The notes under the pieces: generated by a model
Told to the model about the DNA's origin: nothing
The model's input: only the letters and a program-made list of their open reading frames with translations
Database searches by the model: none
Part shown: positions 40,560 through 64,000 of the stretch, piece by piece
Position numbering within the stretch: position 1 is the first letter of the stretch
How the letters are laid out: each line of letters opens with the position of its first letter
Program-made: the position numbers and the translations under genes
From: Basidiobolus meristosporus CBS 931.73
Taxonomy: Eukaryota; Fungi; Basidiobolomycota
Assembly (NCBI GenBank): GCA_002104905.1
Contig: MCFE01000043.1
Location: forward strand, 124,001 to 188,000
Reading direction: 5' to 3'
Length of the DNA stretch: 64,000 nucleotides

Positions 40560-40902
40560 GCGAACTCGTCCACCGACCATCACCTATGTACATACATATT
40601 CCCTTAATTCACCTCTTCCAATATCGTGAATAATAAATCCAATCCATTTTTCCATTCATTGTTGATTCCCCATGCCTCCGTAGTCGATTTGTTTTTCACC
40701 TGTCGACCGGCATCTTGATTGCCAAAAATATTGATGAAAAAATATCCCAGTCCGGAAGCCAATGATCGTTCTGTCGAGACTTCCAACGACAAAAAAATCC
40801 CAATTCCTGATGTGCGAGCGTTCGGCAACGAAGAGGGGGGGGGGGGGATCGCTATATCTGGATTGATCCAGGTTCGTTCTTGGAAGTGTCAGTATTTTCG
40901 AC

Positions 40903-43900: not shown

Positions 43901-45723
43901 TCCTTGCGTGTGGTAAGTTCTTTGCCCGGGCCTCTCCAGCAGTTCGATCGCTCACTCGACGTAGAAAAATTCCCGGTTCTTATCCAGTTCTTCACTCAAC
44001 ACCTCGGAAACTTCCCGGAGATCGTTCACAGGTAGCTGGTCGGACAACGGCTCGATTCCACCGCAACTCCTAACCCATCCCAAGTGCTTTGATTCAAGCC
44101 ATCACTCTAGTCATCTCGGGTGCTTCGTCGGAGGTGCAACGCCAGCAATACTTTGGCCTTGTGACTGGCGCCGTGGAGGTAAGTCCCGCCATCCTGCCCA
44201 TGGATTGTTCAGCCCCATTCACCTCGGCCGAGTAGAAGCAATTCGTCGCCGTGCTCCAGCGCCCTGATTTCAATCAAGTCTACCAGAACTCCGATGTCAT
44301 TTCCCAAGTGCTGAACTCGCTTGATGTACGTATTCTTGTTCCCTGCCGCCCGGCCGTTGCTAACACCCCTGCCCCAGATGCTCGATGGACTGGCCTTGGC
44401 TGCCGACCCCTTCAACACCAAGTATATCCACGCGTTTGCTTCCCGATTCTTCGAAAGCCTTGCCCAGCTTCTCAATATTTATCAACGCCACCCTGAAGTG
44501 GAGATCCAGATCATCCAGCTGCTTTCGTCCTTGTGCAAATATCTGGTGAGTGCCGCGGAGTCTGTATCGTTCTGCTGCGTCTAACCCCCCTCGGAACTCA
44601 GGACTTTAGTGAGCTCGAGGCGCACCAGGTCAGAGACTTCTATCTGGTCATCGGAAACGCCATCAAGGTCTATTCTACCCAGAGCCTTAGTAAGCGTCTA
44701 TTCAACCTCAACCTCAGCCTCAACCCTCACCACGCATCTGCCCTAACCCCTCCCAAGACAAGGCCAGGGATCGCAATTACGACAAGCAGCAGGAGAACCC
44801 TTACCAAGACATCGTTGCCTTCACCAAGCTGTTGTTGGCTCTGATCGTCTCTGAGCCCTCGGCCGCCGACGTCGCCGAAATCCTCTTCTTCGGAACAAAC
44901 CAACTGATTCCCCTGATGACCTTGGAGATGCTCGAGGTTGGTGCCTCGATGTAATGTGGGTGGGTCCCCGTCGCGCTAACCTCGTCTTTGCTTAGATCCC
45001 CAAGATCTGCGGCGATTATGTGGAGCTTATTGCCCAGTTGATTGACCGTTACCACGACAGACTGGTCAACCTTCCATCCGACCTATTCGTAAGCCTGATG
45101 CAGTCCCTGGAGTACGCGCTCAGACAATATCCTTTCTATGCCAGACACCACTGCTAGCTTCGTGGCCCCTAGGCTCCTTGACTCGTGTCCCCACCCCTAT
45201 CTATGACATCTCTAGGTTAGCCTTCCAGTCCATAGCCTCCCTGGCCCTATTCTTCGCCAACAACCCCTCTGCCAAAGGTACGCCCACTGTCCAGCTTCCC
45301 ATTCGTCGCTCTGACTAACTTCCCTGCAGAGTTCCTCCTTCCGACCATGCGGAAGTTCCTGGACCAGATCATGAACATGCTGCTGTACGAGGAATTCGAC
45401 ATGGACTTGCTCGAACCGGCTAGCGAAGCCTTGTACTTGCTAATCGCTTCCCAACAGGTAGCCACCCCTTCACATGACCTGCCCTCGCACCCCGTATTGA
45501 ACTCCCTTCCACTTAGGAGCAATTGAGCGTCATCGCCCACACCGTCATTCAGCAACAAGTCAACCCGCAAGTCCAGGTGAGATTGTCCGGCTACTTCACC
45601 CACCTCCAGCAATCCATACCCGCGGTGCAAACGTATCCGCTGATGGCGAATTGCTCCGCCGGCTTCCGAGACACCCTCACGAAATTCTTGATGGACATTC
45701 GAGGTGTCTTGCGAGTCAAATAA
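40903..45723 (+). CDS. XPO4: Exportin-4 (importin-beta family), about 25 exons
   Basis: Manual splicing through ~24 short introns gives a continuous frame: LERYVCEQVLQVVAVIMKR, EFSSTKASSIGLSWDFHFACKQSFE, LPSDLFVSLMQSLE, ...FLMDIRGVLRVK*, resembling animal XPO4 as I recall it. Confidence 0.9.
45127..45194 (+). other. U12-type (minor spliceosome) AT-AC intron in XPO4
   Basis: 5' site ATATCCTTT, branch site TCCTTGAC (45175-45182), 3' AC 13 nt after the branch A; removal restores LEYALRHPIYDISRLAFQ, retention hits TAG. Confidence 0.92.
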
Positions 45724-47534
45724 TTCCAATCCTCTATAATAAACCTTTTGTTTTCTTCCCATGGATGTATCTGCCGGTACTCTCGCAGCTGTCCTGTGCT
45801 TAGGGGTCTGCTAACCTGTGAATTCATTTAGATACATTGGCTTTTTAGCATAGGGTGGTTGGTTCATACTCTTTCTTGAATTCCTTGAAATTCCCAATCA
45901 TGCCAGTTTTCCATAATACTACAGTTCAAACAAGAAGGATATCATTGTCTTGTATATATATATCATCAAAGTTGGTGAGTTCCACTCCTGATTCACTCCC
46001 CAGTTGTGAAGTTCCATCTGGTAAACCACTGTATTATAGTTATATAAAGGTAACCCAAATGCCTACATGCTCTATAGACATTTAGTAAACCAGCAGATTT
46101 GTATCATCGCACTTGTTTTCCAGGCCACTGCTAATACTCCTAATATCCTGCAATCAAGGCATCATGTACACTCTCTGGGATGTGTCTTATGATCCATCAG
46201 GATACATGACCTGAACTTCTTTACAGAAAGATCAAATACAACACAATTCCTGGAAACACACATCTCCAGAATCATTTTAAAATTTGATACTTTGATGTTG
46301 TTAGTACTTACAAAACATAGTCACATAATGGTTTGGCAAAGAAACCTTATAGAATGAGTCAAAGAAGGTCTCTTAAGTGTAGATGTAGAATTCAGAGTCA
46401 CAAGCAGATCTTTAAGAAATATTTCAAACAGGATACATGACATTTTGGCAGTAAAGGTTTCAAGTCTTTGCTTATTGTTGAATCTAGCAATAGCACCACT
46501 CCTCAGCATGGATCAAAGTTGCCAAATAGATGTCCAAACTCAAATATAAAATTACAATAATAAGATAAACTCAGTAAGCCTTACAATGACTGCAAAGAGT
46601 TAGCATGAAAACTGAGGCATACATACTAATCTCAGTTTTCTGGCAATTTCATGCTAATTACAACCTTGATTAGCCTCTATCAAATTATGTTACAGATCAG
46701 CACTAACCAATATATTAGGATCAGGAGAAAGTAAGGGAAGTGGACTGAATATTTTGTCTGGTGCAAGCTTCAGCCTAAGTAACTTATCAGCACAATCAAT
46801 ATAGCTTGTTTTTGGAGCTAGCCTAAGTTGCTGCCTTGAAAGTAAAGCTATGTGTCAGTTCAGGTCAATACTCTTGGTGTGTTCTTTTCTATGGGATGTA
46901 CTTGCATAAAGAAGGTTCCTGAATATCCACTGCTTTCTCATGTATGTCTATATTCACTCTATGCACAATGTGCTGAGGGATCTCAGTATACATTATGCTC
47001 TAACTATATCATATTACTAAACTGGCTTATTCAGCTGGGTATACTCTGTCTTAGCTTTCTATATGCTCTAATACATCTCAATCTTGCACAAACCATTATG
47101 TATAGACCCAGTTGTCCATCTATTTCTTCCTCTGCAAAGCTCCAAATTACTTACTAACCAAAATTTTTGCCATATATGCTTCTAGCAATTAGCTCACTAG
47201 ACCATAGAACAATACCCTCTATGTCTGACAGTGCCTAAACCTTACTGCTTGATAGTAGTTAATACAGTAACAGATCCAAAGAAAAAGAAGTTGACTACAG
47301 ACCAGGTAGATACCAGCTTAGTATCCAATGAATATCAATTTGGTCCTGCTGGTGGATTCAATCCAGTTCAACAATCAGGATTCTGCAATAAGGCCATGAC
47401 AGTGCCAGCAGTTTGGAATTCTTGACCCTCTTAACAGTATTATGGTGAGTTTGTCACAATGTTTTGCTCTCTTTATTACCAAATAAACTTATAATATTTA
47501 GACAACCTTAAAACAGGGTATTAATGGCATTAGG

Positions 47535-48345
47535 TGCTGCAAAAGTCATGGAGGAATTGGAAGTAACTGGGGGAACAAGTGAATAATGTTGCCTTCACTT
47601 AATGATCCAAGGAATGTAAAAGTGGTATTTATACTTTAAATGCTCTTGGCAACTCAAGCACATAAATATGCTCAGGGAGGTCCCAAGAACCTATGTGCAA
47701 GGTTTTGGGCTGTTTAGACAAGTTTGAGAAATTTCATGTTTTGGATAACTGATGATTTTGTGAGAATATTCAGAGTAAATACCAACAATGAGTTTGGTGA
47801 GGATTCTCTGGGATTTGCAGGTGACAATCTAAGTGACTAAGCTAAGTGAGTATTAGGTGCAATTACACATTTTTACAACACTCCCACTCATCTAAACACT
47901 CATATTAACTAGTTCTTATTGCAATCAAAGATATTCAAGTTTGTCACTAGCAACAGTGTGGTAAATATCTCTGCAATCATTTCATCCTTAGGACCATATG
48001 TTGTGGGAAAACAAGTAGATTATGTGATTTTCACTTAATGATTTATTGTATGTAAAAGTAGTATTTATACTTTTACATGATCTTGGCATAAAAACATGCA
48101 GAATAGGTTTAGGAAGGTCTCAAGAGCATGTGTGCAAGATTTGGGGCAGTTTGGATAACTTTGAGAACTTTCATGTTCTGGGTACCTGATATCTTGGTGA
48201 AAATATTCCAAGTAGTCCCAACATGGAATTTGGTCAGTTATTTTCTAAGATTTGTAGGTAATGATCCAAGTGACTAAGTCAGGTGATTATTCAGGTGGAA
48301 TTACAAATTTGTACAGCACCATAAGCAATGATAACTAAGTTAGTA
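47535..48345 (-). mobile_element. 3' end of a Copia element (RNase H tail, PPT, 3' LTR 47535-47880), interrupted by a solo LTR
   Basis: CTCCCACTCA (reverse PPT) at 47881; reverse complement resembles ~32215-32340. Confidence 0.85.
47999..48318 (-). repeat. Solo Copia LTR with 5-bp TSD CCATA
   Basis: CCATA at 47994-47998 and 48319-48323. Confidence 0.9.
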
Positions 48346-49036
48346 TAATGGTATATGGCTGAATGGATTAGGATTCTTACAATTCAAGGAGCTTGTTTCT
48401 GAGATCTTTTTTCCATTAGCAGGTGGTCCAAAATGGTGGTTAACAGCTCCAATATTTGCATTCTTAGCCTCATTTTGAGCAGCAGCAGATTTGGTAAAAT
48501 CTTCCTCTAGCAATCATTCAATAATGATCTATTTTTTTGCAATTCAAGATAATATTCTATCCAAAAGCTTGTCTAACAGTCAGCTGAGGTCATATGAGTA
48601 CATATAACAATATATTTCATTGTAGATCTGGACCCTCAATTGCTGGAATTACACAATTTTCTTCAGTAGTGGTAGAGCACCAACACATTATATTTCTTGA
48701 CATATTTACATGTCAGCTTGATAGACTCTCCTTCATAACTAGCTTGAGTAGTTACTGAATGAGTCTATTGAAGGCAAGGCATTCTTCTCCACAGCAATAT
48801 CCCCATTAACATAGTCCTTTGAACAGTGGTAGTTGTCTTTAACTTTGGCAGAGCAATAGTGTGGAGGTCTTTCTCCAGACTAGCAGAAAAGGATCCAAGG
48901 CAAAGTAGACACCAAGAGAACAGCAAGCTTGGGGCTCATAACCTGTTGCAATATTCTGAGGAGTATTGGAAGTGATGTGGAGAACTAGAGGATTTACATG
49001 TTATTCACTTGTAGATTTATTGATCAAGATAAATTT

Positions 49037-49314
49037 ATAGTCTACCAGCTGGCAAGTATATGCTATAAGGGCATATGGCCAAATGGATAAGGTGCCTGAC
49101 TATGGATCAGGAGATTCCAGGTTCAATCCCTGGTATGCTTGTTATTTTGCAACCAAGATTTTGTAGTCTACAACTATGAGAAAATGTTACATGCAATGAA
49201 TCAATGAAATACCATTGAAGGAGAGGTCAATTCATCAAGTGTGCCAAGTTCTTAGTCACAAAAGCATAACGTTGGTGAATAAAATATTGGCTTATCTAGC
49301 CAAACATAGAGTGA
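49037..49314 (+). repeat. Fragment of a third copy of the tRNA unit
   Basis: Near-identical to ~56344-56620. Confidence 0.93.
49069..49141 (+). pseudogene. tRNA-Arg(ACG) pseudogene (anticodon now ATG)
   Basis: Copy of 56375-56447 with CpG changes, including B-box GTTCGA>GTTCAA. Confidence 0.88.
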
Positions 49315-49781
49315 TGTTATGTCCTAAAAACGCAGATTGGAGTGATGAACTACTGATTGGTTGATTTGACCAATTTCAGACTGTGAAAATGAACTGTCTT
49401 TATTTAAGGTGAGTGTCACTTTTGATAGTTATTAGCTTGAAGCACTATGTTGCAGTTTGCACAGGATTGTAGCATGATTTCCAATTGCTTGTATCTTGGT
49501 CACTAGTTGAGCTCTGTCTTTGAAACTATATAGCATTAAGGCTTAGTCACTGGGCTATATATAGTGCAAATTTCATGTTACAGGTCTTAGTAATTTTAGA
49601 GTAAATAAAATATTTATCAATAGTTTGATTGTGTCACAAGTAATGACGGTGTGCTTCTGAAACTTGGTACATGTCTTTGGAATTGGTGATGATGCATTGC
49701 TGCCAAGTTTCAGAATTGTACATTCATGGGTTCCTCTTTGCATGGGCTGTTTCTATGGTAGTATATTTTTATTTTGTAACA
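49315..49781 (-). repeat. Gypsy-2 3' LTR (467 bp)
   Basis: TGTTA...TAACA termini; GGTGGAAAAG purine tract adjacent on the minus strand. Confidence 0.85.
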
Positions 49782-50805
49782 TACTTTTCCACCATAATTG
49801 GTTTCTTCTCCTGAAGTAACTTGTTGGCCTTCCTTATTCCACCAGAATTGCTTGTTGCTTTGTTCTTCTGGTGTCATTCTTGCCCTAGTGAGGTAGTTTC
49901 TGTGTACCAAGGTTAGTCTGACTTTGCCTTCCCTATCACACAGCTTAGTATGTGTTAAATGGGCATTTTTGGAGAACTTTGTATGTTCCTTTCCAGTTAG
50001 ACTCAAAATTTTGCTTTGTTTTGTTTTTAATGAGCACATATTCTCCTTCCTAGTAGTTCAGAGTGTTTGCATCTCTTGTCATAGCAGATTTTCAATCTTT
50101 CTGAGGCTCCTTTTGCTCTGGATATGGCTGCTGCTCTATTTTGGCCCAGTTCTTCTTGTTCTCTTGTCTTGTATTCTGCTAGGTCCTCAGGATCCTTATA
50201 TATCCCATAGATCCGGTTTCTGGGTGTCTCCTGGTATGACTGGGTGTCTTCCATACATCATGTAGAATGGGAAGTACCCAGTTGTGGCATGAACTCATAT
50301 TCTGCAAGCAAAAAGTGCCTGATTAATGAACTGGTCACATTTGTGTGTTGCTCCCTTGCAGTATTTGGTTAGCATTCTTCCAAAGAGTTCATTGAATCTT
50401 TCTATGGCTCCATTAGTTCTTGGACAGTAGGCCAAAGTCTAGGAGGTGGTTAATGTTCAGTAACTCCTGGTAGTGTTCCAGGGATTTTGCCATGAAGTTG
50501 GCACCTCTGTCTGTTAGAATTTCAGCTGGGCAACCATAGTTCATTTCTATTTCTTCATATATGAACAAGGCTACTTCTTTGTGGCTTGCTTCTCTGAATG
50601 CTCTTGCTACTGGCCACTTAGTGCAATGGTCTATTCCCACCAGGATCCATTGTTTTACAGAATTTGTTTTAGGTAAAACTCCAATAAAGTCAAGTGCCCA
50701 ATTTGTGGAATGGTTCAACTAGCAGTAGTGGATACATTTGCAAGTTGTTCTGGTGAGCATTTTGGGTGAGTTGGCACTCTGGGCAGGTGCAGACTAGGTG
50801 CTTAA

Positions 50806-51136
50806 TGTTGTAAAATTTGTATTTCCGCCTAAATATTCACCTAACTTGGTCACTTAGATCATCACCTTCAAATCCTAGAGAATACTGACCAAATTCCTTG
50901 TTGGATTTACTTAGAATATTTTCACCAAAATACCAGGTACCCAGAACATGAAAATTCTCAAAGTTGTCCAAACAGCCCCAAACTTTGCACACATGTTCTT
51001 GGGACCTTCCTTAACCTATACTACGTGTTTGTAATGCCAAGACCAGGTAAAAGTATATACTACATCATAATCATAAGTGAAACACATAATCTACTTGTTC
51101 TCCAATCACTTCCAATATCTCCAAGACTCTTACACA
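50806..51136 (+). repeat. Solo Copia LTR with 5-bp TSD CTTAA inside Gypsy-2 integrase region
   Basis: CTTAA at 50801-50805 and 51137-51141. Confidence 0.92.
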
Positions 51137-54011
51137 CTTAATGTCCTTTGACATTCTTGGCCACCAAGCTTTTCTAGACACTGTTTCTGTGGTCCATTTG
51201 ACTCCCAAGTGTCAAAATCCTTGGTGGTACTTGGCTATTAAGTCTGTTCTCATGGCAAATGGTATACATGGCACATTTCCTGCACTGGTTTTCTTGTAGA
51301 TTACTTCTTGGTGTTGAGTGGAAGTGTCTACTGTTTTCTGTCCACTTTTCTTTGGATTTCTGGTGTGGTCTGAGTTGGAAAAGTTCCTGACTCCCAATGC
51401 ACTAGTAGTAGTTCTGGCCAGTCCTTTTCTTCTTGTAGCATAAGTGTTTTCAATGTGGGGTTTCTGGAGAGGGCATCAGCAACATTGATTCTTCTTGCCA
51501 TTGAGGTAAACAATGTCAAAGTCAAATGTCTGTAGGTATTCTACCCATCTTGCTACTTGTCTGGAGAGCTGTTTCTGTGTCCACAAATGTCTCAGGGAGG
51601 CATGGTCAGTTCTAACAGTTACTTTGGTTCCTTCTAGGTAACATCTCCATGTCTTGAAGCATTTCACAGTGGCAGAGAGTTCCTTTTCAGGTACTGGGTA
51701 GTTCAGTTCTGCTGCTTGTAGTTTCTTTGACTCATAGGCAATGGGGTGTTCTCTATTGATGTCATAGGATAGTACCTCTCCAATTGCAAAATCCAAGGCA
51801 TCTGTTGTAACTGGGAATGGTTGCTCAAAGTCAGGGAAGGCTAGCACTGGGGTGTTGCTCAAGCAGTCCTTTAACTGCTGTCAGGCTGTTTCTTGCCTCT
51901 TGGTCCATAGGTACGGTTCTTTGTTTTGCAGGAGTTGTGTCAGTGGAGCTGCTATTCTTGAGAAGTCTTTGATGAACCTTCTATAGTAACTTGTTAGTCC
52001 CAGGAATGATCTTAGTTCCTTTACTGTTTTAGGGCTGGGCCATGTCTTGATAACTTCTATTTTCTTTGGGTCTGTTCTGAGCCCTTTTGCAGAGAGTATG
52101 TGTCCCAAATATTCCACTTCTTGGATGAAAAATTCATATTTCTTTGGGTTTGCTACAAGCTTGTGTTCTTCTAGGATCCTTAGTACCTGTTTCAAGTCCT
52201 TTGTATGTTGTTCCTCATTCTTACTGTATATCAGGATGTCATCCAGGAAGATGATTACAGATTTGTCCAGGAGATCCTTGAGTATGTTGTTCATAATTGT
52301 CATGAATGTGGCTGGGGCATCAGTGAGACCAAAGCTGAGTACTGTGAACTCATAATGTCCATATCTTGTTCTAAAGGTGGATTTTGAGATGTCTTCTGGC
52401 TTAATTCTGACTTGATAATACCCTGAAGTTAAGTTAATTTTGCTGAATATCTTAGCTCCTTGTAATCTCTCTATTAGCTCTTGCACTTTTGACAGTGCAT
52501 ATCTATTCTTGACTGTTACTGAGTTGAGAGCTTGGTAGTCTACACACATTCTGAGTGAGCCATCTTTCTTTGGTACAAAGAGGATAAGAGATCCCCAAGG
52601 GGAATTGCTTGGCCTAATGAATGCCTGTTGCAGTAGCTTGGTTATTTGATTCTTCAGAGTATCCAGCTCCTTGGGACTTAGGCTGTAAATGGGTCTTACT
52701 ACAGGCTTGGCTGTACTAGTGTTGATTTCATGATCCACTTCTCTAGCTGGAGGAAATTTGGTTAATTTTCCTGGAAGACCCTGGGGAACTTGCTGGCTAG
52801 ATCTTGTAAGATCTTAGGGAAGTTTCTTGGGGTGATTTCCTCACAGCATATGGGATGATGGTCAATGTCTAGCCGGGCTGCCTGGGTCATTTGGGTGGTG
52901 GTCATCAAAAATTTCCAAGTGCTTTTTTTTTTTCACAAGGGCTGTGTATAACCTTCCTTTTATCCTTACTGGTAGATATACTAGCAGAGTGGATTGGCTT
53001 TGTGTTTGTGCTGTCATTGACTTGGCCAAATATAATGTTTCCTTAGCTTGGAAGTGGTCATGGTCATAGCTTCCTAGTGCACCTGGCTGATCCATTAGAT
53101 TTGCTTGGGAGTGCTCTGGTGAGTTCTTACAGGCGGTTCCTGCATGTTTTTCTTTCTGATCACTTTGTCTTTTTCTACAATCTTTGATGAAGTAACCAGA
53201 TTTTCTACAGTAGTAACACCTGTACCATGTTTTTGAGTTACTAGGGTTGTCTGTCTGCTGTATGTGATCTAATTCCATGGGAGTGGGGCCTTTGGGGGTG
53301 TTCTGCAAATGATCTGGCCAGTTGTGCTGATTCTTCTAGGAGGATGTATGGTAGAAGTGTGGTTTGGTTGCCCATATGGAGTCATAGGTGATGGCATAGT
53401 GTATTGCTGCTTCTGTGGTTGTGGGGAACTTGTAGCTTACTTCTGCTTTTGTTCTTCCCTTGAGACCTTTTAAGAAGTAATGTATCCTATCTCCTTCTGC
53501 CATTTCAAAGACTTGTGCAAAGATGTTCTTGAAGTTTTGTACGTACTCCAATACACTATTTTTCTGTATGAGATTTTCTAGCTCAATTCTTAGTGTTCCT
53601 TGAAAGTTTGGGGAAGGAAGAAGCTTATGATTTTGGTATTAAAGGAGTCCCAACTGGGGAAAGCACAAGTGTTGCTTGCATTTGCTTGTAGTAACTTCCC
53701 TTGGTACCATGATTGAGCTGTGCCTTGTAAGTAACTTCCTATGATGGCTATTTTCTTGTTGCCATCCATGACATTCTTTGCTTGGAACACCTGTTCCACT
53801 TGCACAATCCAGGCAGTTATATTCCCTCCAGTTTTATCACTATAACTATTTAGGTGTATAGGGATTCTGGTATCTTGCCTGTTCATTTCGTTCTTCATTT
53901 TAGTACACAGTGTTAGCTGTGCCCAAAGGATACCTTCCAAGGTGTGTTGCCAAGTAGTAGATTCATCTGTGGGCATGTTTTCTTAATGGCTTCTACCAGT
54001 GATAATGTATA

Positions 54012-54021
54012 GCTGCTACCA
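54012..54021 (-). other. Gypsy-2 primer-binding site (tRNA-iMet 3' end)
   Basis: Minus strand TGGTAGCAGC is complementary to GCTGCTA+CCA of the tRNA-iMet at 59093-59164; 2 nt from the LTR. Confidence 0.85.
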
Positions 54022-54023
54022 AA

Positions 54024-54190
54024 TGTTATGTCCTAAAAACGCAGATCGGAGTGATGAACTCTGGTTGTTTAATTCGACCAATTTCGGACTGTGAAAATCG
54101 ACTGTCTTTATTTAAGGTGAATGTTCACTTTTTATAGTTATTAGTTTGAAACACTTTCTTGCGGTTTGCGCGGGATTGTTGCATGATTCC
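54024..54190 (-). repeat. Gypsy-2 5' LTR remnant (167 bp)
   Basis: Aligns with 49315-49480; fused directly to a truncated tRNA-Arg(TCT). Confidence 0.9.
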
Positions 54191-54252
54191 GACTCAAACC
54201 CACAATCCTCAGATTAGAAGTCTGATGCCTTATCCAATTAGGCCACGGGGGC
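54191..54252 (-). pseudogene. tRNA-Arg(TCT), 3'-truncated by the LTR junction
   Basis: Matches 59416-59477 except one C-to-T-type change; acceptor 3' strand and part of the T-stem missing. Confidence 0.9.
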
Positions 54253-54411
54253 ATTTCGTTCTTGTTCCCTTTGTTTTGCGTATAGATGTAAACTAAATGA
54301 AGTACTATCCGGTGATTCCCTTGTGACTCTAGTGACTGTATTCTTATGACCGTCCAAATTTCTGCCAAACCTTAGCCAATTTTAAGTAACATTGGCTAAA
54401 AAAATAAAAAT

Positions 54412-54484
54412 TGCCGTCTCTGCGGATCGAACGCAGGACCTTCAGAACTTCAGTCTGACGCTCTCCCAACTGAGCTAAGACGGC
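54412..54484 (-). tRNA. tRNA-Phe(GAA)
   Basis: Cloverleaf, loop CTGAAGT, GTTCGA T-loop, downstream T-run. Confidence 0.95.
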
Positions 54485-54722
54485 TATACATTTGCTTGAA
54501 TATTGAGTATGAATTAGTTGGCTAATAGTGTAAGATAGTGTCATCACTACCTTGGGCAAGCCCTGTTTGCCTTAGTATCTGCAATACATCCCGTAGTCAT
54601 GGCATACTCTGGATAATAGTTATTTTAATGAATCGCAGTAACCCGTATGGATTTTGTACTACTTAGCCCCTTTGTAACTACTAAGGAGATATATCTGATC
54701 AAGATTTGGTTGCAAGCGTATT

Positions 54723-54796
54723 GCTCTTGTGGCGCAATTGGCTAGCGCGTCTGACTGTTAATCAGGAGGTTGGTGGTTCAAGCCCACCCAGGAGCG
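54723..54796 (+). tRNA. tRNA-Asn(GTT)
   Basis: GCTCTTG/CAGGAGC acceptor; loop CTGTTAA. Confidence 0.95.
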
Positions 54797-55017
54797 ATTA
54801 CCTTTTGCTTGAAGCTTTAGCACTCCCTTTTTTGCCATTCGGCTGGAAACGGGTTAGGAGTCTGGGGTATATTTGTATGTGCCACACACATGTTACTGTC
54901 AACTATCTATTTTAATGAATGTACTTGAATACTGAAGCGAAGAGCTGCACCGCCATTATCCAAGGAGTAAAACTCAAAACTTCTCAGCCAACTAATGTAG
55001 CTGGGACAAAACAAGAC

Positions 55018-55103
55018 TCCGAACACCCGGATTTGAACCAGGGACCTAAAGATTGCTATGGTAACACTACAGTCTTCCGCTCTACCAACTGAGCTATGTT
55101 CGG
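55018..55103 (-). tRNA. tRNA-Tyr(GTA) with 13-nt intron
   Basis: CCGAACA/TGTTCGG acceptor (C1-G72); intron TGTTACCATAGCA after position 37. Confidence 0.95.
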
Positions 55104-55203
55104 GAGTTCACGGGAGTGGGAACCAATATCAATGATAGACTAGATGTTTCAAATAATTGCAGCATTCCCATACATTCCTTTATAACATCTGGAACGTGAA
55201 AAT

Positions 55204-55286
55204 GGAGAGATGGCCGAGTTGGTCTAAGGCGTCACGTTAAGGCCGTGATCTCTTCGGAGGCGTGGGTTCGAATCCCACTCTCTTCA
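55204..55286 (+). tRNA. tRNA-Leu(AAG)
   Basis: Long variable arm; loop TTAAGGC. Confidence 0.93.
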
Positions 55287-55537
55287 TTAGTTTTTGCGCT
55301 CTTCTTTTTCCCGGTATTTCTCTTGACCTTTGGGATGTACACCACCGGTGATCAGGTAGAGCAACAATTTTATGACATGGCCACTTCACTATATGGATAG
55401 CCACTATGATTATGCTCAGTTTAGGCATTGATATGATTGATTTGCCCGCACAGCATTGATGGATATCTTGGCAAATCCCCACGCATACAAAAAAAACCAG
55501 CAGCAGCACCTACATTCAAGTAGAGCCGTTGGCAAAA

Positions 55538-55610
55538 TGCCTTCTGCCGGAATTGAACCAGCGACCTTCTGCTTACTAGGCAGACGCTCTGCCAACTGAG
55601 CCAAGAAGGC
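55538..55610 (-). tRNA. tRNA-Thr(AGT)
   Basis: GCCTTCT/AGAAGGC acceptor; loop CTAGTAA. Confidence 0.95.
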
Positions 55611-56177
55611 AATATGTCTGAGCGCACTAGATGGGCTCTATGAGGAAAATACCTAAGCAAGAGTCTTATTCTATAAAGCTATTTGGGGTGATAAACTGAT
55701 GTAGCACCAGAGCCATGATGTCAGAAGGTAGGGCGGCATGATTGTGCGCAACAACGATAGGTTCGAATTGCAGTTGGACATACCCTACGGAGTGGCTAAC
55801 CAGATGATAAACCGTAAGGCGGTTATGCCAAAAGTTTTGGCAGCCAGCAGTGTTGTTTTGAGGGGCAGTTTAGCCTTGATATTTTGCATTGATTAACTAA
55901 CCCTAATCAAAGGAGGAAACATGCACATTCCTGGAGCTTCGGGTATATGACTCGGCCATCCAAGTCCTTTTTCTGTTTTGTCAGCTTTATGGTGAGTAAG
56001 GTAAGAAGCAACACCTGCGTCCAAGCAGGCACATAACTCCTACTCTTGCCATTCCCAGCAAAACAGCAACGATACAGTAAGCCAGATGCAGCTAGCCAAC
56101 AAAAGAATGAAACGTATTATCTCATACGTCAAAGTATTGCTCAAAGAAAGGAAATCGCAAAGACACCTACAGCAAAA

Positions 56178-56248
56178 TGCATACTCGGGGAATCGAACCC
56201 CGGTCTACCGCGTGGCAGGCGGTAATTATACCACTAAACCAAGTATGC
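56178..56248 (-). tRNA. tRNA-Gly(GCC)
   Basis: GCATACT/AGTATGC acceptor; loop CTGCCAC. Confidence 0.95.
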
Positions 56249-56374
56249 AATTACAATAGGGGGGCGGAAAGGTAGTTCATGATAACATTCAGGGGAAGCA
56301 GTGCGCAACTTTGGATGTCACCACCAAAGGCTAAAGAGATTCATAGTCTACCAGCTGGCAAGTATATGCTATAA

Positions 56375-56447
56375 GGGCGTATGGCCAAATGGATAAGGCG
56401 CCTGACTACGGATCAGGAGATTCCAGGTTCGATCCCTGGTATGCTCG
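56375..56447 (+). tRNA. tRNA-Arg(ACG)
   Basis: Loop CTACGGA; GTTCGA T-loop. Confidence 0.95.
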
Positions 56448-56655
56448 TTATTTTGCAACCAACATTTTGTAGTCTACAACTATGAGAAAATGTTACATGC
56501 AATGAATCAATGAAATACCATTGAAGGAGAGGTCAATTCATCAAGTGTGCCGAGTTCTTAGTCACAAAAGCATAACGTTGGTGAATAAAATATTGGCTTA
56601 TCTAGCCAAACATAGAGTGTACTTAGTCAAGAACGTATTTAAATTCAAAAAGGTT

Positions 56656-56727
56656 TTCCCCATCGGGGAATCGAACCCCGGCCGTCTCGGTGAGAGCGAG
56701 AAATCCTAACCACTGGACCAATGAGGA
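56656..56727 (-). tRNA. tRNA-Glu(CTC)
   Basis: TCCTCAT/ATGGGGA acceptor; loop CTCTCAC. Confidence 0.95.
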
Positions 56728-57021
56728 CTTGTTGATGATACTACTATATGTTTATCTCTTAGTGAACTCGCCATAGTAATAGCACTTACCTAGGCTTAGT
56801 GCAAACCGATTGCTACATTGTGAATCTGGGCGTGTGCCTCCCAGTTGGAATCTTGCATTTTAGACCATCAATTCTATATCAAAACAGTAAGATACTCCGG
56901 AAGCAACGCAACTTAAGAGTGTATGTATTCGCATACCTCGCATACCAAGGGTTAAGAAGTGTGTAAAGTAGATGCCCTTTGCACATTACTAAATAAGCAA
57001 ATATTTGTATGTTATCGAACA

Positions 57022-57095
57022 GCTCGCATAGCTCAGTTGGTTAGAGCGTGGTGCTAATAACGCCAAGGTCGCAGGTTCGACCCCTGCTGTGAGCA
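57022..57095 (+). tRNA. tRNA-Ile(AAT)
   Basis: Loop CTAATAA; T-run terminator downstream. Confidence 0.95.
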
Positions 57096-57268
57096 AATTT
57101 CCTTTTTCGTTTTTTCCTTGCTAACTCATTTCCCTCAAGTTATCGTCGAAATAGATACATACACAAGTGTACTTTCACAAAGTTGTTGTTTAGTGGCTTT
57201 GTTATATTGTATGCTGATAAACACTTGGTAGAAATATACAGTTTATTCTTTATTTTATCGTAACTAAT

Positions 57269-57340
57269 TCTCAGATAGTATAGTGGTAAGTATCCCCGCC
57301 TGTCACGCGGGAGACCCGGGTTCAATTCCCGGTCTGAGAG
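57269..57340 (+). tRNA. tRNA-Asp(GTC)
   Basis: TCTCAGA/TCTGAGA acceptor; loop CTGTCAC; TTTTT terminator. Confidence 0.95.
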
Positions 57341-57699
57341 CTTTTTACATGCCACTCTAAGTATAGTAGTATAGGCAGTAGCAATATTTTATTACTCGAT
57401 AACCCGTTTATTTGAAAATACATAGATAATGTTTTTACAACAGTATTTCTGCCTCATATATATATATATACATGTATGTGCCTCCGTTTGCATCTTGGAC
57501 CATAGTTATAGGATATGGATCTTTACTGGGAATCGTACCAAAGATTTCACCCACACAAAGAGCGAGTATACCGCCAAATCCTCAAGGCAATACCACCCTA
57601 ACAAGATGCACAATACACTATCGGTCATTTTACAAAAGTCCTCAAGAATACACCAGTACCTAGCAATATCACCACTACTCCAGAAAGCCTAATATAAAT

Positions 57700-57772
57700 G
57701 GGGGTCTAGCTCAGATGGTAGAGCGCTCGCTTAGCATGCGAGAGGCACTGGGATCGATACCCAGGTCCTCCA
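57700..57772 (+). tRNA. tRNA-Ala(AGC)
   Basis: G3:U70 pair; loop TTAGCAT; one T:T mismatch in the acceptor stem; TTTTT terminator. Confidence 0.9.
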
Positions 57773-57889
57773 TTTTTGCCATGTTGCAGTAAAGAATTTT
57801 AATATTTGCAGCAATGCTATTTTCCATTCGCTCAAAGCCATTCATTTATATTTATCTCGGGCATAAAAAAACTGTTAAAGTGTGTAAAA

Positions 57890-57961
57890 AGGACGCAGGC
57901 GGATTTGAACCACCGACCTATTGATCTGCAGTCAATTGCTCTACCACTGAGCTATACGTCC
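57890..57961 (-). tRNA. tRNA-Cys(GCA)
   Basis: Loop CTGCAGA; U73 discriminator. Confidence 0.95.
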
Positions 57962-58085
57962 GTTACTTGGAGGGCTAATATTATACAGATTCACATATCC
58001 GTGAATGCAACAATGATCTGTCAATCTCATCAATTGCCGTTTGAAAAGTAAATCGATCAAAAGCGGATCAAGGCAAAAGTATAAG

Positions 58086-58158
58086 CACCCAACGTGGGGG
58101 TCGAACCCACAACCTTGAGATTAAGAGTCTCACGCTCTACCGATTGAGCTAGCCGGGC
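58086..58158 (-). tRNA. tRNA-Lys(CTT)
   Basis: GCCCGGCTAGCTCA start; loop CTCTTAA. Confidence 0.95.
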
Positions 58159-58435
58159 CACGTGGCTGTATGTGTAAAAGCTTAGTTATATTCCTTTTGT
58201 TTGCTTGAAAAGACCTGCGACCATTAATGCATAGCATAAAATCATACCACCTATATAGACATATATACTTCATCCCAAGGGATTTTCGAATATCTACGAT
58301 ATTTCACTGTGTGAAACAGACACCCAGAGCATGGTACTGCATATATTAGGAGAACCTGAGGTATAGAATCACCGCACAATTGTTGTTTTGTAATGCATAG
58401 TAACAACACAGAGTAAAAAAAATATCAAAAGAAAC

Positions 58436-58508
58436 TGCTCCCTGCCAGGATCGAACTGGCGACCTTCAGATTATGAGACTAACGCGCTGCCAACTGCGCT
58501 AAGGAAGC
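58436..58508 (-). tRNA. tRNA-Met(CAT), elongator
   Basis: G1-C72, U31:U39, normal GTTCGA T-loop. Confidence 0.95.
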
Positions 58509-58677
58509 ATGTATACCGGGGATATCTTATATCAATATATTACAAGCTCCAGACTATTTTGCGTGATTTAATACCCCACGGTAGGGTAGCAATAATCATT
58601 CAGGAGGTACAACATTGTGCCAGCAAAATTCAAACAACATTAAAAATGAGCCTTTACAACGTAGTTGAATGCAAAAG

Positions 58678-58749
58678 TTCCCCATCGGGGAATCGAACCC
58701 CGGCCGTCTCGGTGAAAGCGAGAAATCCTAACCACTGGACCAATGAGGA
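58678..58749 (-). tRNA. tRNA-Glu(TTC)
   Basis: Identical to the Glu(CTC) gene except at the wobble base. Confidence 0.95.
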
Positions 58750-59092
58750 ATACATGAAAACATTCTAACTACAATGCTGTGTTAATGTGTAAGTGTAATG
58801 TTGCACAGCAGTTCGATCGTTAATACATCCCTTTGCTAGGTCTATTTCGCATGATGAAAATTGCACCCTTGGCAGTACAATAAGTTATTGTGTGTGAGTG
58901 CTTAGAAGCCTCTGGTCAAGGTAAAGGCTTCTAGCATATACGGCAAGTTCTTGGGCAAGATTTGATTGCAGATTCTGTAAAGAGAAGCAATAAGTATACA
59001 TATTCTTCAACTCCTATTTAGCATTCACACATTTTCATGGTATAAATGTAATAGCGACACTCATACATTTGAGGAGTCAGCAAAAGATTAGA

Positions 59093-59164
59093 TAGCAGCG
59101 AGAGGTTTCGATCCTCCGACCTCGGGGTTATGAGCCCCGCGCGCTTCCTCTGCGCTACGCTGCT
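59093..59164 (-). tRNA. tRNA-iMet(CAT), initiator
   Basis: A1-U72, GATCGAAA T-loop (A54), consecutive G-C pairs at the base of the anticodon stem. Confidence 0.96.
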
Positions 59165-59404
59165 TTGTTGAATATCTAAGACAAAGACGCCCTTTGACCC
59201 TTTGGTAGGACTGTATTACAATCTGATATTTTGACTGTGCCCATGCACGCATACCTCCAGTTTAAATAGTATACAAACTGTAACCATTCAAAAGGGTATG
59301 ATTCACACCTCTGAAATGGCTCTTCCTACCCAATCCTATAAAACACATGTCAAGCAACAAAAGACTCTTGATGCCGACCAGTAATCAGTACAAAAAGAGA
59401 AAGC

Positions 59405-59477
59405 CACCCCGGTGGGACTCGAACCCACAATCCTCAGATTAGAAGTCTGATGCCTTATCCAATTAGGCCACGGGGGC
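59405..59477 (-). tRNA. tRNA-Arg(TCT), full-length copy
   Basis: Loop CTTCTAA; acceptor 3' strand appears one G short (GCCCCCG vs CGGGGT-G). Confidence 0.8.
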
Positions 59478-59636
59478 ATTTCGTTCTTGTTCCCTTTGTT
59501 TTGCGTATAGATGTAAACTAAATGAAGTACTATCCGGTGATTCCCTTGTGACTCTAGTGACTGTATTCTTATGACCGTCCAAATTTCTGCCAAACCTTAG
59601 CCAATTTTGAGTAACATTGGCTAAAAAAATAAAAAT

Positions 59637-59709
59637 TGCCATCTCTGCAGATCAAACGCAGGACCTTTGGAACTTCAGTCTAATGCTCTTCCAACTGAGC
59701 TAAGGCGGC
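59637..59709 (-). pseudogene. tRNA-Phe pseudogene
   Basis: 4 of 6 CpGs lost, including in the T-loop and acceptor stem. Confidence 0.9.
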
Positions 59710-59947
59710 TATACATTTGCTTGAATATTGAGTATGAATTAGTTGGCTAATAGTGTAAGATAGTGTCATCACTACCTTGGGCAAGCCCTGTTTGCCTTAG
59801 TATCTGCAATACATCCCGTAGTCATGGCATACTCTGGATAATAGTTATTTTAATGAATTGCAGTAACCTGTATGGATTTTGTACTACTTAGCCCCTTTGT
59901 AACTACTAAGGAGATATATCTGATCAAGATTTGGTTGCAAGCGTTTT

Positions 59948-60021
59948 GCTCTTGTGGCGCAATTGGCTAGCGCATTTGACTGTTAATCAGGAGGTTGGTG
60001 GCTCAAGCCCACCCAGGAGTG
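59948..60021 (+). pseudogene. tRNA-Asn pseudogene
   Basis: GGTTCA>GGCTCA in the B-box plus stem transitions. Confidence 0.85.
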
Positions 60022-60242
60022 ATTACCTTTTGCTTGAAGCTTTAGCACTCCCTTTTTTGCTATTCAGCTGGAAACGGGTTAGGAGTCTGGGGTATATTTG
60101 CATGTGCCACACACATGTTACTGTCAACTATCTATTTTAATGAATGCACTTGAATACTGAAGCAAAGAGCTGCACCGCCATTATCCAAGGAGTAAAACTT
60201 AAAACTTCTCAGCCAACTAATGTAGCTGGGACAGAACAAGAC

Positions 60243-60328
60243 TCCAAACACCTGGATTTGGACCAGGGACCTAAAGATTGCTATGGTAACACTACAGTCT
60301 TCTGCTTTACCAACTGAGCTATGTTTGG
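60243..60328 (-). pseudogene. tRNA-Tyr pseudogene
   Basis: Acceptor, D- and T-arm transitions relative to 55018-55103. Confidence 0.88.
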
Positions 60329-60428
60329 GAGTTCACGGGAGTGAGAACCAATATCAATGATAAGCTAAATTTTTCAACTAATTGCAGCATTCCCATAGAT
60401 TCCTTTATAACATCCGGAACATGAAAAT

Positions 60429-60511
60429 GAGGAGATGGACAAGTTGGTCTAAGGTGTCACATTAAGGCCGTGATCTCTTTGGAGGCGTGGGTTTGAATCC
60501 CACTCTTTTCA
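60429..60511 (+). pseudogene. tRNA-Leu pseudogene
   Basis: GTTCGA>GTTTGA and several CpG losses. Confidence 0.88.
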
Positions 60512-60758
60512 TTAGTTTTTGCTCTCTTCTTTTTCCTGGTATTTCTCATGACCTTTGGGATGTACACCACCGGTGATTGGGTAGAGCAACAATTTTATGA
60601 CATGGCCACTTCACTATATGGATAGCCACTATGATTATGCTCAGTTTAGGCATTGATATGATTGATTTGCCTGCACAGCATTGATGGATATCTTGGCAAA
60701 TCCCCATGCATACAAAAAAACCAGCAGCACCTACATTCAAGTAGAGCCCTTGGCAAAA

Positions 60759-60831
60759 TGCCTTCTGCCGGAATTCTACCAGCAACCTTCTGCTTACTAG
60801 GCATATGCTCTGCCAACTGAGCCAAGAAGGC
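60759..60831 (-). pseudogene. tRNA-Thr pseudogene
   Basis: T-loop disrupted (aattgaac>aattctac on the + strand). Confidence 0.88.
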
Positions 60832-61352
60832 AATATGTCTGAGCATACTAGATGGGCTCTATGAGGAAAATACCTAAGCAAGAGTCTTATTCTATAAAGC
60901 TATTTGGGGTGATAAACTGATGTAACACCAGAGCCATGATGTCAGAAGGTAGGGCGGCATGATTGTGCGCAACAATGATAGGTTTGAATTGCAGTTGGAC
61001 ATACCCTACAGAGTGGCTAACCAGATGATAAACTGTAAGGCAGTTTAGCCTTGATATTTTGCATTGATTAACTAACCCTAATCAAAGGAGGAAACATGCA
61101 CATTCCTGGAGCTTTGGGTATATGACTTGGCCATCTAAGTCCTTTTTCTGTTTTGTCAGCTTTATGGTGAGTAAGGTAAGAAGCAACACCTGTGTCCAAG
61201 CAGGCACATAACTCCTACTCTTGCCATTCCCAGCAAAACAGCAACAATACAGTAAGCCAGATGCAGCTAGCCAACAAAATAATGAAACATATTATCTCAT
61301 GCGTCAAAGTATTGCTCAAAGAAAGGAAATTGCAAAGACACTTACAGCAAAA

Positions 61353-61423
61353 TGCATACTTGGGGAATTGAACCCTGGTCTACCGTGTGGCTGGTGGTAA
61401 TTATACCACTAAACCAAGTATGC
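61353..61423 (-). pseudogene. tRNA-Gly pseudogene
   Basis: U33>A and several CpG losses. Confidence 0.88.
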
Positions 61424-61549
61424 AATTACAATAGGGGGGCGGAAAGGTAGTTCATGATAATATTCAGGGGAAGCAGTGCACAACTTTGGATGTCACCACC
61501 AAAGGCTAAAGAGATTCATAGTCTACCAGCTGGCAAGTATATGCTATAA

Positions 61550-61622
61550 GGGTGTATGGGCAAATGGATAAGGTGCCTGATTACAGATCAGGAGATTCCA
61601 GGTTCAATCCCTGGTATGCTTG
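61550..61622 (+). pseudogene. tRNA-Arg(ACG) pseudogene (anticodon now ACA)
   Basis: ctacgga>ttacaga; GTTCGA>GTTCAA. Confidence 0.88.
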
Positions 61623-61830
61623 CTATTATGCAACCAACATTTTGTAGTCTACAACTATGAGAAAATGTTACATGCAATGAATCAATGAAATACCATTGAA
61701 GGAGAGGTCAATTCATCAAGTGTGCCAAGTTCTTAGTCACAAAAGCATAACGTTGGTGAATAAAATATTGGCTTATCTAGCCAAACATACAGTGTACTTA
61801 GTCAAGAACGTATTTAAATTCAAAAAGGTT

Positions 61831-61902
61831 TTCCCCATCAGGGAATCAAACCCCGGCCGTCTCAGTGAGAGCAAGAAATCCTAACCACTGGACCAATGAG
61901 GA
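61831..61902 (-). pseudogene. tRNA-Glu(CTC) pseudogene
   Basis: CG>CA changes in the T-loop, T-stem and anticodon stem. Confidence 0.88.
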
Positions 61903-61904
61903 CA

Positions 61905-62421
61905 AACACAGAAGAGCTGAGGACATACATCAGGTACTCAATACCCAGGGCACTCTGAATCTAGCTCCTGTGGCTTGTAACATGTCACAAAAATGCATGG
62001 CACTATCTTGGTCCACTGGTATTATCTGGCACTATATGTGCTTTGTATAGATCTTACTTTAGGGCTAAGAATTATATATAGTGCCAGATAATACCAGTGG
62101 ACCAAGATAGTGCCATGCATTTTTGTGACATGTTACAAGCCACAGGAGCTAGATTCAGAGTGCCATGGGTATTGATCACCTGACACATGTCTTCAGTTCT
62201 TCTATGCTCTTACACATCCTGCACTACATTGACCAAAAAAAAAGGTCAGAAAATTGATTTTCTCCAACACAATGGGTGAAACACAGGGGTGGCTTTGCAT
62301 AAAGATGCAGAGCTATGTTTCACACTCTGTGGCCAAGTATAGGTTCACCTATCCTCCCTGGCACACTATGGCATCATTTGGCACTCATGGCTCAATGTGG
62401 TACTATCCAACAGAACAAATC
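61905..62421. mobile_element. Foldback element, copy D (left arm truncated)
   Basis: Right terminus GAACAAATC; inner arms form a perfect ~88-bp inverted repeat. Confidence 0.85.
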
Positions 62422-63950
62422 AATTTACTCAAGTGGCCTTTTGAAGCCATTTCTACTAAAAGTACATTGGAAGCATTGGGAGCCATATGTGGACACTGTA
62501 CAAATACTTATCCAGAAGCAGATCCACAATGCCAACTTGATGCATCTAGAGCCTTTGTGCAAAGAGTTTATGATGGGATTTGAGCAGCTATACTACAAGC
62601 ATAAAGCTGAATGTGTAGATATCTATTACTACTAGTTCCATTTCCTACTTCATCTTGCTTGGTGTGTTGAAAATAATAACCTTGCTTCACCTTTTGAGAG
62701 TTTCCAATCAAGCAGATGTGTAGTGACATGGGAAGACAAGTCAAGTTGCAGGCACTACCCTATCCCAATTTTGTAAAAGAATGTTACCTTCAAGCCCATC
62801 ATGGATGTGATGAGTTGGCAAATGGAGGACAGCCACAAAGAGTTGGAAAATACTGAGGACAGATGTACACATGGAGACACCTATGCCTATGGCTTTAAGA
62901 AGCTAAGTGGCACCTATGCATGGGTACTCAGTTAATAATCAAAATTGGGTTGGGTGCAACAAGCAACTAGTTTTCATTTGGAAACTCTACTAAGGTGTGT
63001 CTGATTTCTCTTGGTCACAAGCCAACTTCTACACCATTGAATACCATAGCCACACAAGCAAGAGCCTGAATGTACCTATAAGGGGGACTAGAATCCAGCT
63101 GGGAGAAGGAATCTATTGGTCAAGTACCAAGAAGTTCCTTGCAGATATTAAGGAGGTATTCATAGCAGAAGTGGCTTCAACTAAAAATATGATTGAAAGA
63201 TGTTTATATTGTTGCAAGTCTTGGTATAAGAGTTGTAGAGGAATAGGGAGTTTAGCTAGTATTGTATTCACTAAAACTTGAACTGATTTTTATTGAGGTT
63301 CCAGCAGCTTCTTATTTACATTTTGCCAGATCATTTGCTGACTAATTGTATTTCCTAATGTAGGCTGTGGCTGATGACTCATTTGATTGCATCATCATCA
63401 CCCAATTAGATCCTACTTAATATAACTATATCTGTCTGATAAGGATCTGCTAGTTCATCTGCTGACCAATACTACTGATTTGATTGATAACACTGATGTA
63501 CTGATAGGCTAAGCATAAAACTAATTGATTTGACTAAAAACTGATCTAACTTAAACATTCAAGTAGTAGATCATAACAATATTACCCGCAACACAAGGTA
63601 TATGGCAATTTTGCACACATCACACCACAAAGTTGCAGAGTTGAGGTGATAGAAGTATGTCAGTTGTAGTAGGTATGTGTGTTTGTAGAGGTTAGAAAGC
63701 AGGAGGCCATAGTATTGTTTGATTTAATCTAAATGTGAAATACCCAAGGTAGTAGTGGGTAAGCAAATAAACAGGGGCAACTCTAAAGTGGAATATGGAG
63801 TGAGCAAGGGTAGGTAGAAAAAGGAAATACAATTTTGATAATTGATATGGTGGCATTATGTATGACTAGGTGTAGGCCACCATACTGCTGTGATAACGCC
63901 ATCAGAGGTTGCAAAGAGGCTGTCAAAGCACTATTAAGTTTTGCGTCTTG
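62422..63950 (+). mobile_element. Second CACTA/EnSpm transposase relic, interrupted by a solo Gypsy LTR
   Basis: LLKPFLLKVHWKHWEPYV...EFMMGFEQLYY; DNA similarity to ~16025-16150 and ~17950-18960. Confidence 0.75.
63210..63578 (-). repeat. Solo Gypsy-1 LTR with 4-bp TSD ATAT
   Basis: Reverse complement of 3576-3943; ATAT at 63206-63209 and 63579-63582. Confidence 0.92.
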
Positions 63951-64000
63951 TAAAGAACTACATTTTCTCCTTGATAAATTCTGCTTTGACGCATCTGTTT

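Follow-up and report, generated by a model that had tools for sequence, protein, structure and literature searches.

A probable relic of a tandem array of 17-gene tRNA cassettes in the fungus Basidiobolus meristosporus

We analysed a 64,000-nucleotide stretch of the genome of the early-diverging fungus Basidiobolus meristosporus CBS 931.73 (GenBank assembly GCA_002104905.1, contig MCFE01000043.1, positions 124,001 to 188,000 of the forward strand; hereafter referred to as the window, whose own numbering is used below). It contains a 5,225-bp cassette of 17 different intact tRNA genes, which we call unit 1, with decayed pieces of the same cassette on both sides. We consider it likely that the locus is what remains of a tandem array, in which one unit is probably transcribed by RNA polymerase III (Pol III) and free of methylation, and the flanking units are silenced, methylated and decaying.

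The intact cassette

Unit 1 occupies positions 54191–59478 with a period of 5,225 bp, and both ARAGORN and Rfam found 17 intact, mutually different tRNA genes in it, all within 54412–59478. According to ARAGORN, the set comprises 16 anticodons for 15 amino acids plus the initiator, with six genes on the plus strand and 11 on the minus strand:

Gene 1 of 17: tRNA-Phe-GAA, minus strand, the first intact gene of unit 1
Gene 2 of 17: tRNA-Asn-GTT, plus strand
Gene 3 of 17: tRNA-Tyr-GTA, minus strand, with an intron
Gene 4 of 17: tRNA-Leu-AAG, plus strand
Gene 5 of 17: 55537–55611, minus strand, tRNA-Thr-AGT
Gene 6 of 17: 56177–56249, minus strand, tRNA-Gly-GCC
Gene 7 of 17: tRNA-Arg-ACG, plus strand
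Gene 8 of 17: 56656–56727, minus strand, tRNA-Glu-CTC
Gene 9 of 17: tRNA-Ile-AAT, plus strand
Gene 10 of 17: tRNA-Asp-GTC, plus strand
Gene 11 of 17: tRNA-Ala-AGC, plus strand
Gene 12 of 17: tRNA-Cys-GCA, minus strand
Gene 13 of 17: tRNA-Lys-CTT, minus strand
Gene 14 of 17: 58435–58509, minus strand, elongator tRNA-Met
Gene 15 of 17: 58678–58749, minus strand, tRNA-Glu-TTC
Gene 16 of 17: 59093–59164, minus strand, initiator tRNA-Met (Rfam 63.3 bits and sequence features)
Gene 17 of 17: 59403–59478, minus strand, intact tRNA-Arg-TCT, the last live gene before the decayed copy

These are the genes that a preliminary description of the window had listed, one each and in mixed orientation, and both programs recovered all of them in place. 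The presence of both methionine tRNAs in the unit, which had also been proposed, was borne out: gene 16 shows the features of an initiator, namely the A1:U72 pair, an anticodon stem closed by three G-C pairs, and A54/A60 in the T loop, and gene 14 is the elongator. The 17 intact genes scored 53–72 bits with Rfam. Over the whole window, ARAGORN reported 25 tRNA-like genes, all of them in 49069–61902, and Rfam 26 tRNA-family matches.

Five of the unit 1 anticodons have A at position 34 (A34), the tRNA-Tyr gene contains an intron, and CCA is not encoded in any of the genes. Because of these three features, we assign the unit 1 genes to the eukaryotic nuclear type; the same features rule out that the array is bacterial, organellar or from a phage. 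Of the 17 genes, 15 are followed within 8 nt by a run of four or more T residues. Since the cloverleaves are intact, A and B boxes are present and T-runs follow nearly all of the genes, transcription of unit 1 by Pol III is very probable. The spacers measure 99–565 bp each and 3.9 kb in all. tRNA gene islands have been described as groups of at least five genes of several isotypes that lie within at most 5 kb in varied orientation (PMC13578239), and unit 1, with 17 genes of 15 isotypes in 5.07 kb, can be counted among them.

The unit 1 anticodons were compared with the codons of the PGM gene in the same window, whose third positions are C in 62% and G in 23% of cases. With standard wobble, the anticodons read 33 of the 61 sense codons and 71% of the PGM codons, a proportion that rises to 92% when only the PGM codons for the 15 amino acids of the unit are considered, in agreement with the earlier suggestion that the anticodons suit the C- and G-ending codons of this gene. 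Unit 1 supplies one major isoacceptor for each of the 15 amino acids, plus the initiator.

Two further observations concern the genes of the unit. A TATA motif starts between −40 and −12 in nine of the 17 intact genes, against a background of 21.5% in their own spacers (binomial P = 0.004), which hints at TATA-assisted Pol III promoters such as those of fission yeast and plants. The Glu(CTC) and Glu(TTC) genes differ solely at the wobble base of the anticodon and have about 20 bp of 3′ flank in common (56632–56655 and 58658–58677). These similarities suggest that one gene was recently duplicated inside the unit and its anticodon then shifted by one base, or that gene conversion has taken place between the pair.

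Decayed copies and one-sided loss of CpG

Comparison of the window with itself by BLAST gave three matches between unit 1 and other parts of the locus:

54191–55824 of unit 1 with 59416–61045, 95.5% identity
55864–56728 of unit 1 with 61039–61903, 96.2% identity
56339–56619 of unit 1 with the fragment 49033–49313, 97.2% identity

The elements that adjoin the intact genes are the following:

49033–49313, plus strand: third-unit fragment of 281 bp, unit positions 2149–2429, with an Arg(ACG) copy mutated to ATG
49316–54190, minus strand: degenerate Ty3/gypsy long terminal repeat (LTR) retrotransposon with LTRs of about 165 bp at 49316–49479 and 54025–54190
54191–54253, minus strand: tRNA-Arg(TCT) relic, Rfam 30.3 bits over 54197–54252
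59479–61903, with homology from 59416, both strands: decayed partial copy (unit 2, hereafter copy 2) with apparent pseudogenes for Phe, Asn, Tyr, Leu, Thr, Gly, Arg(ACG>ACA) and Glu(CTC)
61896–62217: foldback element resembling a miniature inverted-repeat transposable element, with 142-nt arms that are 90% complementary and a 38-nt loop

Copy 2 (59416–61903) consists of 2,488 bp that are 95.9% identical to unit 1; it covers unit positions 1–2538 only and breaks off at 61903, 1 nt upstream of the 5′ end of its Glu(CTC) copy. The repeat offset of +5,225 bp given in the preliminary description is correct (it changes to +5,221 and then to +5,175 after deletions of 4 bp and 46 bp in copy 2); the full second copy that the description implied is not there, as just 48% of the unit is present and all eight of its tRNAs are mutated. 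Similarly, the Arg(TCT) gene that had been placed at the head of the unit is at that position a relic, whose 3′ 13 nt were lost at the LTR and which carries C56>T in the B box as its sole difference (A at 54196 versus G at 59421), and the intact gene is the one at the other end, at 59403–59478. The third fragment, expected at about 49037–49314, was located within a few bases of these limits.

As in other multi-tRNA tandem units, each unit contains at least two different genes, and the head-to-tail repetition extends to the spacers as well as the genes. All three pieces are collinear parts of a single cyclic unit, with differences of about 1–2% at non-CpG sites. The simplest history that fits the sequences would therefore be one head-to-tail array of at least three units, which was later invaded and truncated. 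No unit-like sequence was found in 61904–64000 or 45800–49032, and no tRNA relic was detected there even at Rfam E ≤ 1.

The Ty3/gypsy element, which separates the 281-bp fragment from unit 1, has LTRs with TG...CA ends and contains the Pfam domains Ty3 capsid, RVT_1, RT_RNaseH and rve in broken minus-strand open reading frames (ORFs), in the order capsid, reverse transcriptase, RNaseH and integrase. Its right LTR adjoins the Arg(TCT) relic, at unit position 1, and its left LTR adjoins unit position 2429. Alignment of the junctions revealed no matching target-site duplication; the flanking 5-mers differ, and the flanks are not contiguous in the unit. These features indicate that the element is not there by simple insertion, and that about 2.8 kb of the array was lost through recombination or deletion once the element had inserted. 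On the other side, the foldback element starts where copy 2 breaks off, at the 5′ end of the last tRNA pseudogene. This element also gave sub-threshold Rfam matches to microRNA precursors, which are taken as reflecting its hairpin alone.

The differences between unit 1 and copy 2 are strongly one-sided. There are 103 substitutions and two indels in 2.5 kb; 52 of the substitutions are CpG>TpG/CpA losses in copy 2, and two are in the opposite direction (one-sided binomial probability about 1e-13, by our own arithmetic). Counted by dinucleotides, unit 1 has 82 CpGs, of which copy 2 lacks 55 (29 changed to TG, 23 to CA); conversely, of the 29 CpGs in copy 2, unit 1 lacks two. The C>T and G>A changes outside CpG are symmetric (19 versus 15 in reverse), showing that the decay process is CpG-specific. 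In the segment shared by all three pieces, unit 1 is the odd one at four sites, and at all four it keeps a CpG that each of the others has lost independently.

The tRNA copies themselves are affected without exception, with four to nine changes in each of the eight genes of copy 2. The rate of change is higher in the genes (7.5%) than in the spacers (2.9%) of copy 2, because the genes are rich in CpG. The Rfam scores are reduced as follows:

Phe: intact gene 65.7 bits, copy 2 47.0 bits
Asn: intact gene 65.7 bits, copy 2 56.4 bits
Tyr: intact gene 59.8 bits, copy 2 53.5 bits
Leu: intact gene 56.1 bits, copy 2 35.7 bits
Thr: intact gene 69.3 bits, copy 2 52.9 bits
Gly: intact gene 65.6 bits, copy 2 35.8 bits (copy 2 gene missed by ARAGORN)
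Arg: intact gene 60.8 bits, copy 2 43.4 bits
Glu: intact gene 59.5 bits, copy 2 48.7 bits

Judged from their sequences, the extra tRNA copies look like pseudogenes. The repeated genes at this locus do not look functional, and the functional-looking tRNA complement of the window is one, not two or three. Decay of the anticodon CpG in Arg(ACG) copies accounts for two ARAGORN predictions, ‘Cys(ACA)’ at 61550 and ‘His(ATG)’ at 49069. For annotation, these two are best treated as mutated Arg pseudogenes, and the eight copies in 59637–61902 should not be counted as tRNA genes.

Unit 1 forms a CpG island, with an observed/expected (o/e) CpG ratio that is clearly above that of its surroundings, even in the spacers:

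1–34 kb, 46–54 kb and 62–64 kb: transposon DNA, CpG o/e 0.01–0.15
34–46 kb: GC-rich gene block, CpG o/e about 0.9
Unit 1: CpG o/e 0.67–0.78 (duplicated half 0.67, unduplicated half 0.78)
Unit 1 spacers alone: CpG o/e 0.58
Copy 2: CpG o/e 0.27; its spacers 0.25
281-bp fragment: CpG o/e 0.10

The left edge of the island is sharp and lies near 54000, inside the right LTR of the Ty3/gypsy element; that LTR keeps eight CpGs and its twin keeps one. CpG retention extends about 200–400 bp past the outermost intact genes and includes DNA without tRNA function, which favours a state of the whole region over an explanation by selection on tRNA sequences alone.

Damage to the internal promoter is frequent in the relics. 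Positions 54–57 of the T loop, which belong to the B box, are changed in all eight genes of copy 2, in the Arg copy of the fragment (49069–49141) and in the truncated Arg-TCT gene. The invariant residues T54, T55 and C56 are changed in six of the eight copy 2 genes, including all three whose B box is free of CpG. In a permutation that keeps the numbers of CpG-type and other changes of each gene, six or more of eight genes hit at T54/T55/C56 had P = 0.007, and eight of eight hit within positions 52–62 had P = 0.05; both tests are post hoc. The pattern of B-box damage is suggestive, and promoter loss may precede, or lock in, methylation-driven decay.

Explanations for the locus

The sequence itself shows the anatomy of the locus, its mobile-element junctions, the CpG island and the bias of CpG decay towards one side. 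To account for them we propose the following course of events, in which we infer that methylation is the cause, that Pol III occupancy gives protection, and in what order the steps took place. A head-to-tail array of the 5,225-bp, 17-gene nuclear cassette, at least three units long, would once have stood at the locus. One unit appears to have survived whole, its genes very probably still transcribed by Pol III, and occupancy by TFIIIC, TFIIIB and Pol III would keep cytosine methylation out of the island. Surplus units would have lost this occupancy and then been methylated along with the neighbouring transposons. Ty3/gypsy and foldback elements would have cut the flanking units, and CpG>TpG/CpA transitions of the deamination type would be erasing them, the CpG of the B box included. 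CpG methylation is known to exclude TFIIIC and to be anti-correlated with Pol III occupancy (PMC11346459); clusters of tRNA genes mark chromatin transitions in the centromeres of fission yeast (10.1101/2022.12.06.519325).

Several points weigh against this course of events. The Thr(AGT) and Gly(GCC) genes of unit 1 are followed by TTT only, with no run of four or more T residues in the 40 nt downstream. On the right, the island has no sharp edge and fades gradually over about 1 kb (approximately 59.4–60.4 kb). In the Gly and Arg copies of copy 2 and in the Arg copy of the fragment, the only B-box change is G57>A, which is within the consensus, and B-box loss is therefore not universal among the relics. 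We found no direct statement in the literature on 5-methylcytosine or DNA methyltransferases in Basidiobolus. Finally, gene conversion from an active array elsewhere could keep unit 1 fresh.

Taken to its end, this last idea would have unit 1 maintained without any local shield against methylation, solely through purifying selection acting on its tRNAs or through conversion by an active array elsewhere. tRNA sequences are indeed under strong selection; selection on them leaves unexplained why CpG is retained in 3.9 kb of spacers and in the adjoining LTR, which conversion tracts are not expected to include, and we regard an explanation along these lines as very unlikely. The LTR bears equally on a duplication-triggered mutagenesis resembling repeat-induced point mutation (RIP) with a preference for CpG, acting instead of methyl-CpG decay in silenced chromatin, since one LTR escaped and its twin did not. 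Three features would suit such a process: a fungal host, the location of the mutations in repeats, and changes that are C>T and G>A transitions. Known RIP, however, hits both partners of a duplication, whereas here the losses are 52 to 2 and the CpG ratio of the duplicated half of unit 1 is near that of the unduplicated half (0.67 versus 0.78). Moreover, non-CpG C>T and G>A changes are about as frequent as their reverse, and CpG is depleted over all the transposable-element DNA of the window, not in the local repeats alone. We give this mechanism, too, a very low probability.

The preliminary description had read the locus as an rDNA-like multi-tRNA cassette. The part of this reading that stands is the multi-species cassette duplicated head to tail. 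A long array of near-identical functional units, homogenised at high copy number by concerted evolution like ribosomal DNA (rDNA), would share with the locus the repetition of the whole unit with its spacers, and the low divergence of the copies outside CpG indicates that homogenisation may have acted until recently. What the window holds is 1.5 units and a 281-bp scrap, not many near-identical units; the longer copy has diverged by one-sided decay without sign of homogenisation, every extra tRNA copy is mutated, and unit 1 is bounded by an LTR element on the left and on the right by the decayed copy that ends in the foldback element. No more relics were detected in 45.8–49 kb or 62–64 kb with the permissive Rfam search. 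An rDNA-like array at this locus is thus improbable. It could also be asked whether unit 2 or the fragment is an artefact of assembly, a misplaced haplotype or the consensus of error-rich reads, as the assembly does contain haplotigs or recent duplicates, shown by a second, 99%-identical contig for 33239–45973. The differences between the copies are context-specific transitions and not indels of the long-read type (two indels in 2.5 kb), and the Arg-TCT gene is seamless across the boundary of units 1 and 2, which makes an artefact extremely unlikely.

The relic of a silenced and decaying array thus accounts best for the locus, and it provides a natural experiment: near-identical neighbours of which one is live and CpG-rich and the others are dead and CpG-poor, with the edge of protection a few hundred bases past the last intact gene. 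It makes testable whether Pol III occupancy shields DNA from cytosine methylation, and whether deamination of the B-box CpG locks in silencing. A bolder proposal, which we hold to be rather unlikely, is that much of the nuclear tRNA repertoire of Basidiobolus resides in a few tandem cassettes, namely this one and a companion for Ser, Pro, Val, Gln, His and Trp, and that a bistable switch between TFIIIC binding and methylation decides the fate of each unit. Units still bound by TFIIIC at their B boxes would stay free of methylation; those that lose binding would be methylated, and deamination of the B-box CpG would then fix the loss for good. If true, it would amount to a cassette-level, epigenetically policed system of tRNA-gene dosage in a fungus.

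Related tRNA gene arrays and the flanking DNA

Xenopus laevis has a tandem 3.18-kb unit with eight tRNA genes. Entamoeba histolytica has 25 types of array with one to five tRNA types per unit (PMC6175992), and heterogeneous tRNA clusters arose many times in eukaryotes (PMC2888827). The Basidiobolus cassette resembles both systems in being a unit of several tRNA genes and spacers, arranged head to tail and composed of heterogeneous nuclear Pol III genes. It differs from them in its 17 tRNA species per unit, compared with eight or at most five, in its fungal host, and in the presence of one live unit with decaying partial copies instead of a long homogeneous array. In addition, nine of its neighbouring gene pairs are parallel and eight antiparallel, whereas those of Xenopus are nearly all parallel (PMC2888827), and, unlike the Entamoeba units, it lacks short tandem repeats between the genes.

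The tRNA islands of metazoans and Chlamydomonas are multi-family and of mixed orientation, with no obvious repeated motifs (PMC13578239). Unit 1 is like them in combining many isotype families in varied orientation within about 5 kb, and unlike them in that the whole island has been duplicated in tandem. Another fungal case is that of the centromeric clusters of fission yeast, in which different tRNA genes are likewise embedded in repeat-rich DNA and live tRNA genes stand at a boundary of chromatin state, which in Basidiobolus is read from CpG retention; fission yeasts, in contrast, have no CpG methylation and their clusters are smaller, as in the three-gene ‘RIA’. In Arabidopsis, the tandem Ser-Tyr-Tyr and Pro tRNA clusters are silenced and methylated, and the repression is reversible, according to the work as it is cited in PMC13578239. 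As far as that citation goes, the likeness is that surplus clustered tRNA copies are under epigenetic repression, as they would be in Basidiobolus; the Arabidopsis clusters, as cited, have one or two isotypes per unit and reversible repression, whereas the Basidiobolus copies have already decayed by mutation.

We found no description of tRNA arrays in Basidiobolus in the searchable literature, nor any paper citing the assembly accession. A 2026 review describes fungal tRNA genes as almost exclusively dispersed singletons (PMC13578239), so the tandemly duplicated 17-species cassette of Basidiobolus, an early-diverging fungus, widens what is known of how tRNA genes are organised. The locus adds a fungal case to the known multi-tRNA arrays, with unusually many species per unit, as a relic and not as a working array.

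The window as a whole is of two parts, transposon DNA with 36–43% GC and an excess of TpG/CpA, and the 12-kb gene block (34000–46000) with 52–58% GC, which encodes FMN reductase, PGM and exportin-4. Contig MCFE01001146.1 of the same assembly (15.4 kb) is 99.0% identical to 33239–45973 and stops 250 bp beyond exportin-4, at the start of the repeats; it represents a haplotig or else a segmental duplication of very recent date. The orthologous contig of B. ranarum carries no tRNAs and breaks off within exportin-4, in its 5′ part. A search of the representative library with an exportin-4 exon gave nothing closer than 48% identity, and a protein look-up against assembled contigs gave no recorded match for the 610-amino-acid PGM ORF, for the ORF at 62315–62635 or for a spacer ORF. 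The PGM protein itself (38880–40559) is recorded on MCFE01000043.1, a contig of 201,235 bp. The longest ORF of the gene starts 51 codons upstream of the database start (38727–38879), and a start at 38880 agrees with the domain positions.

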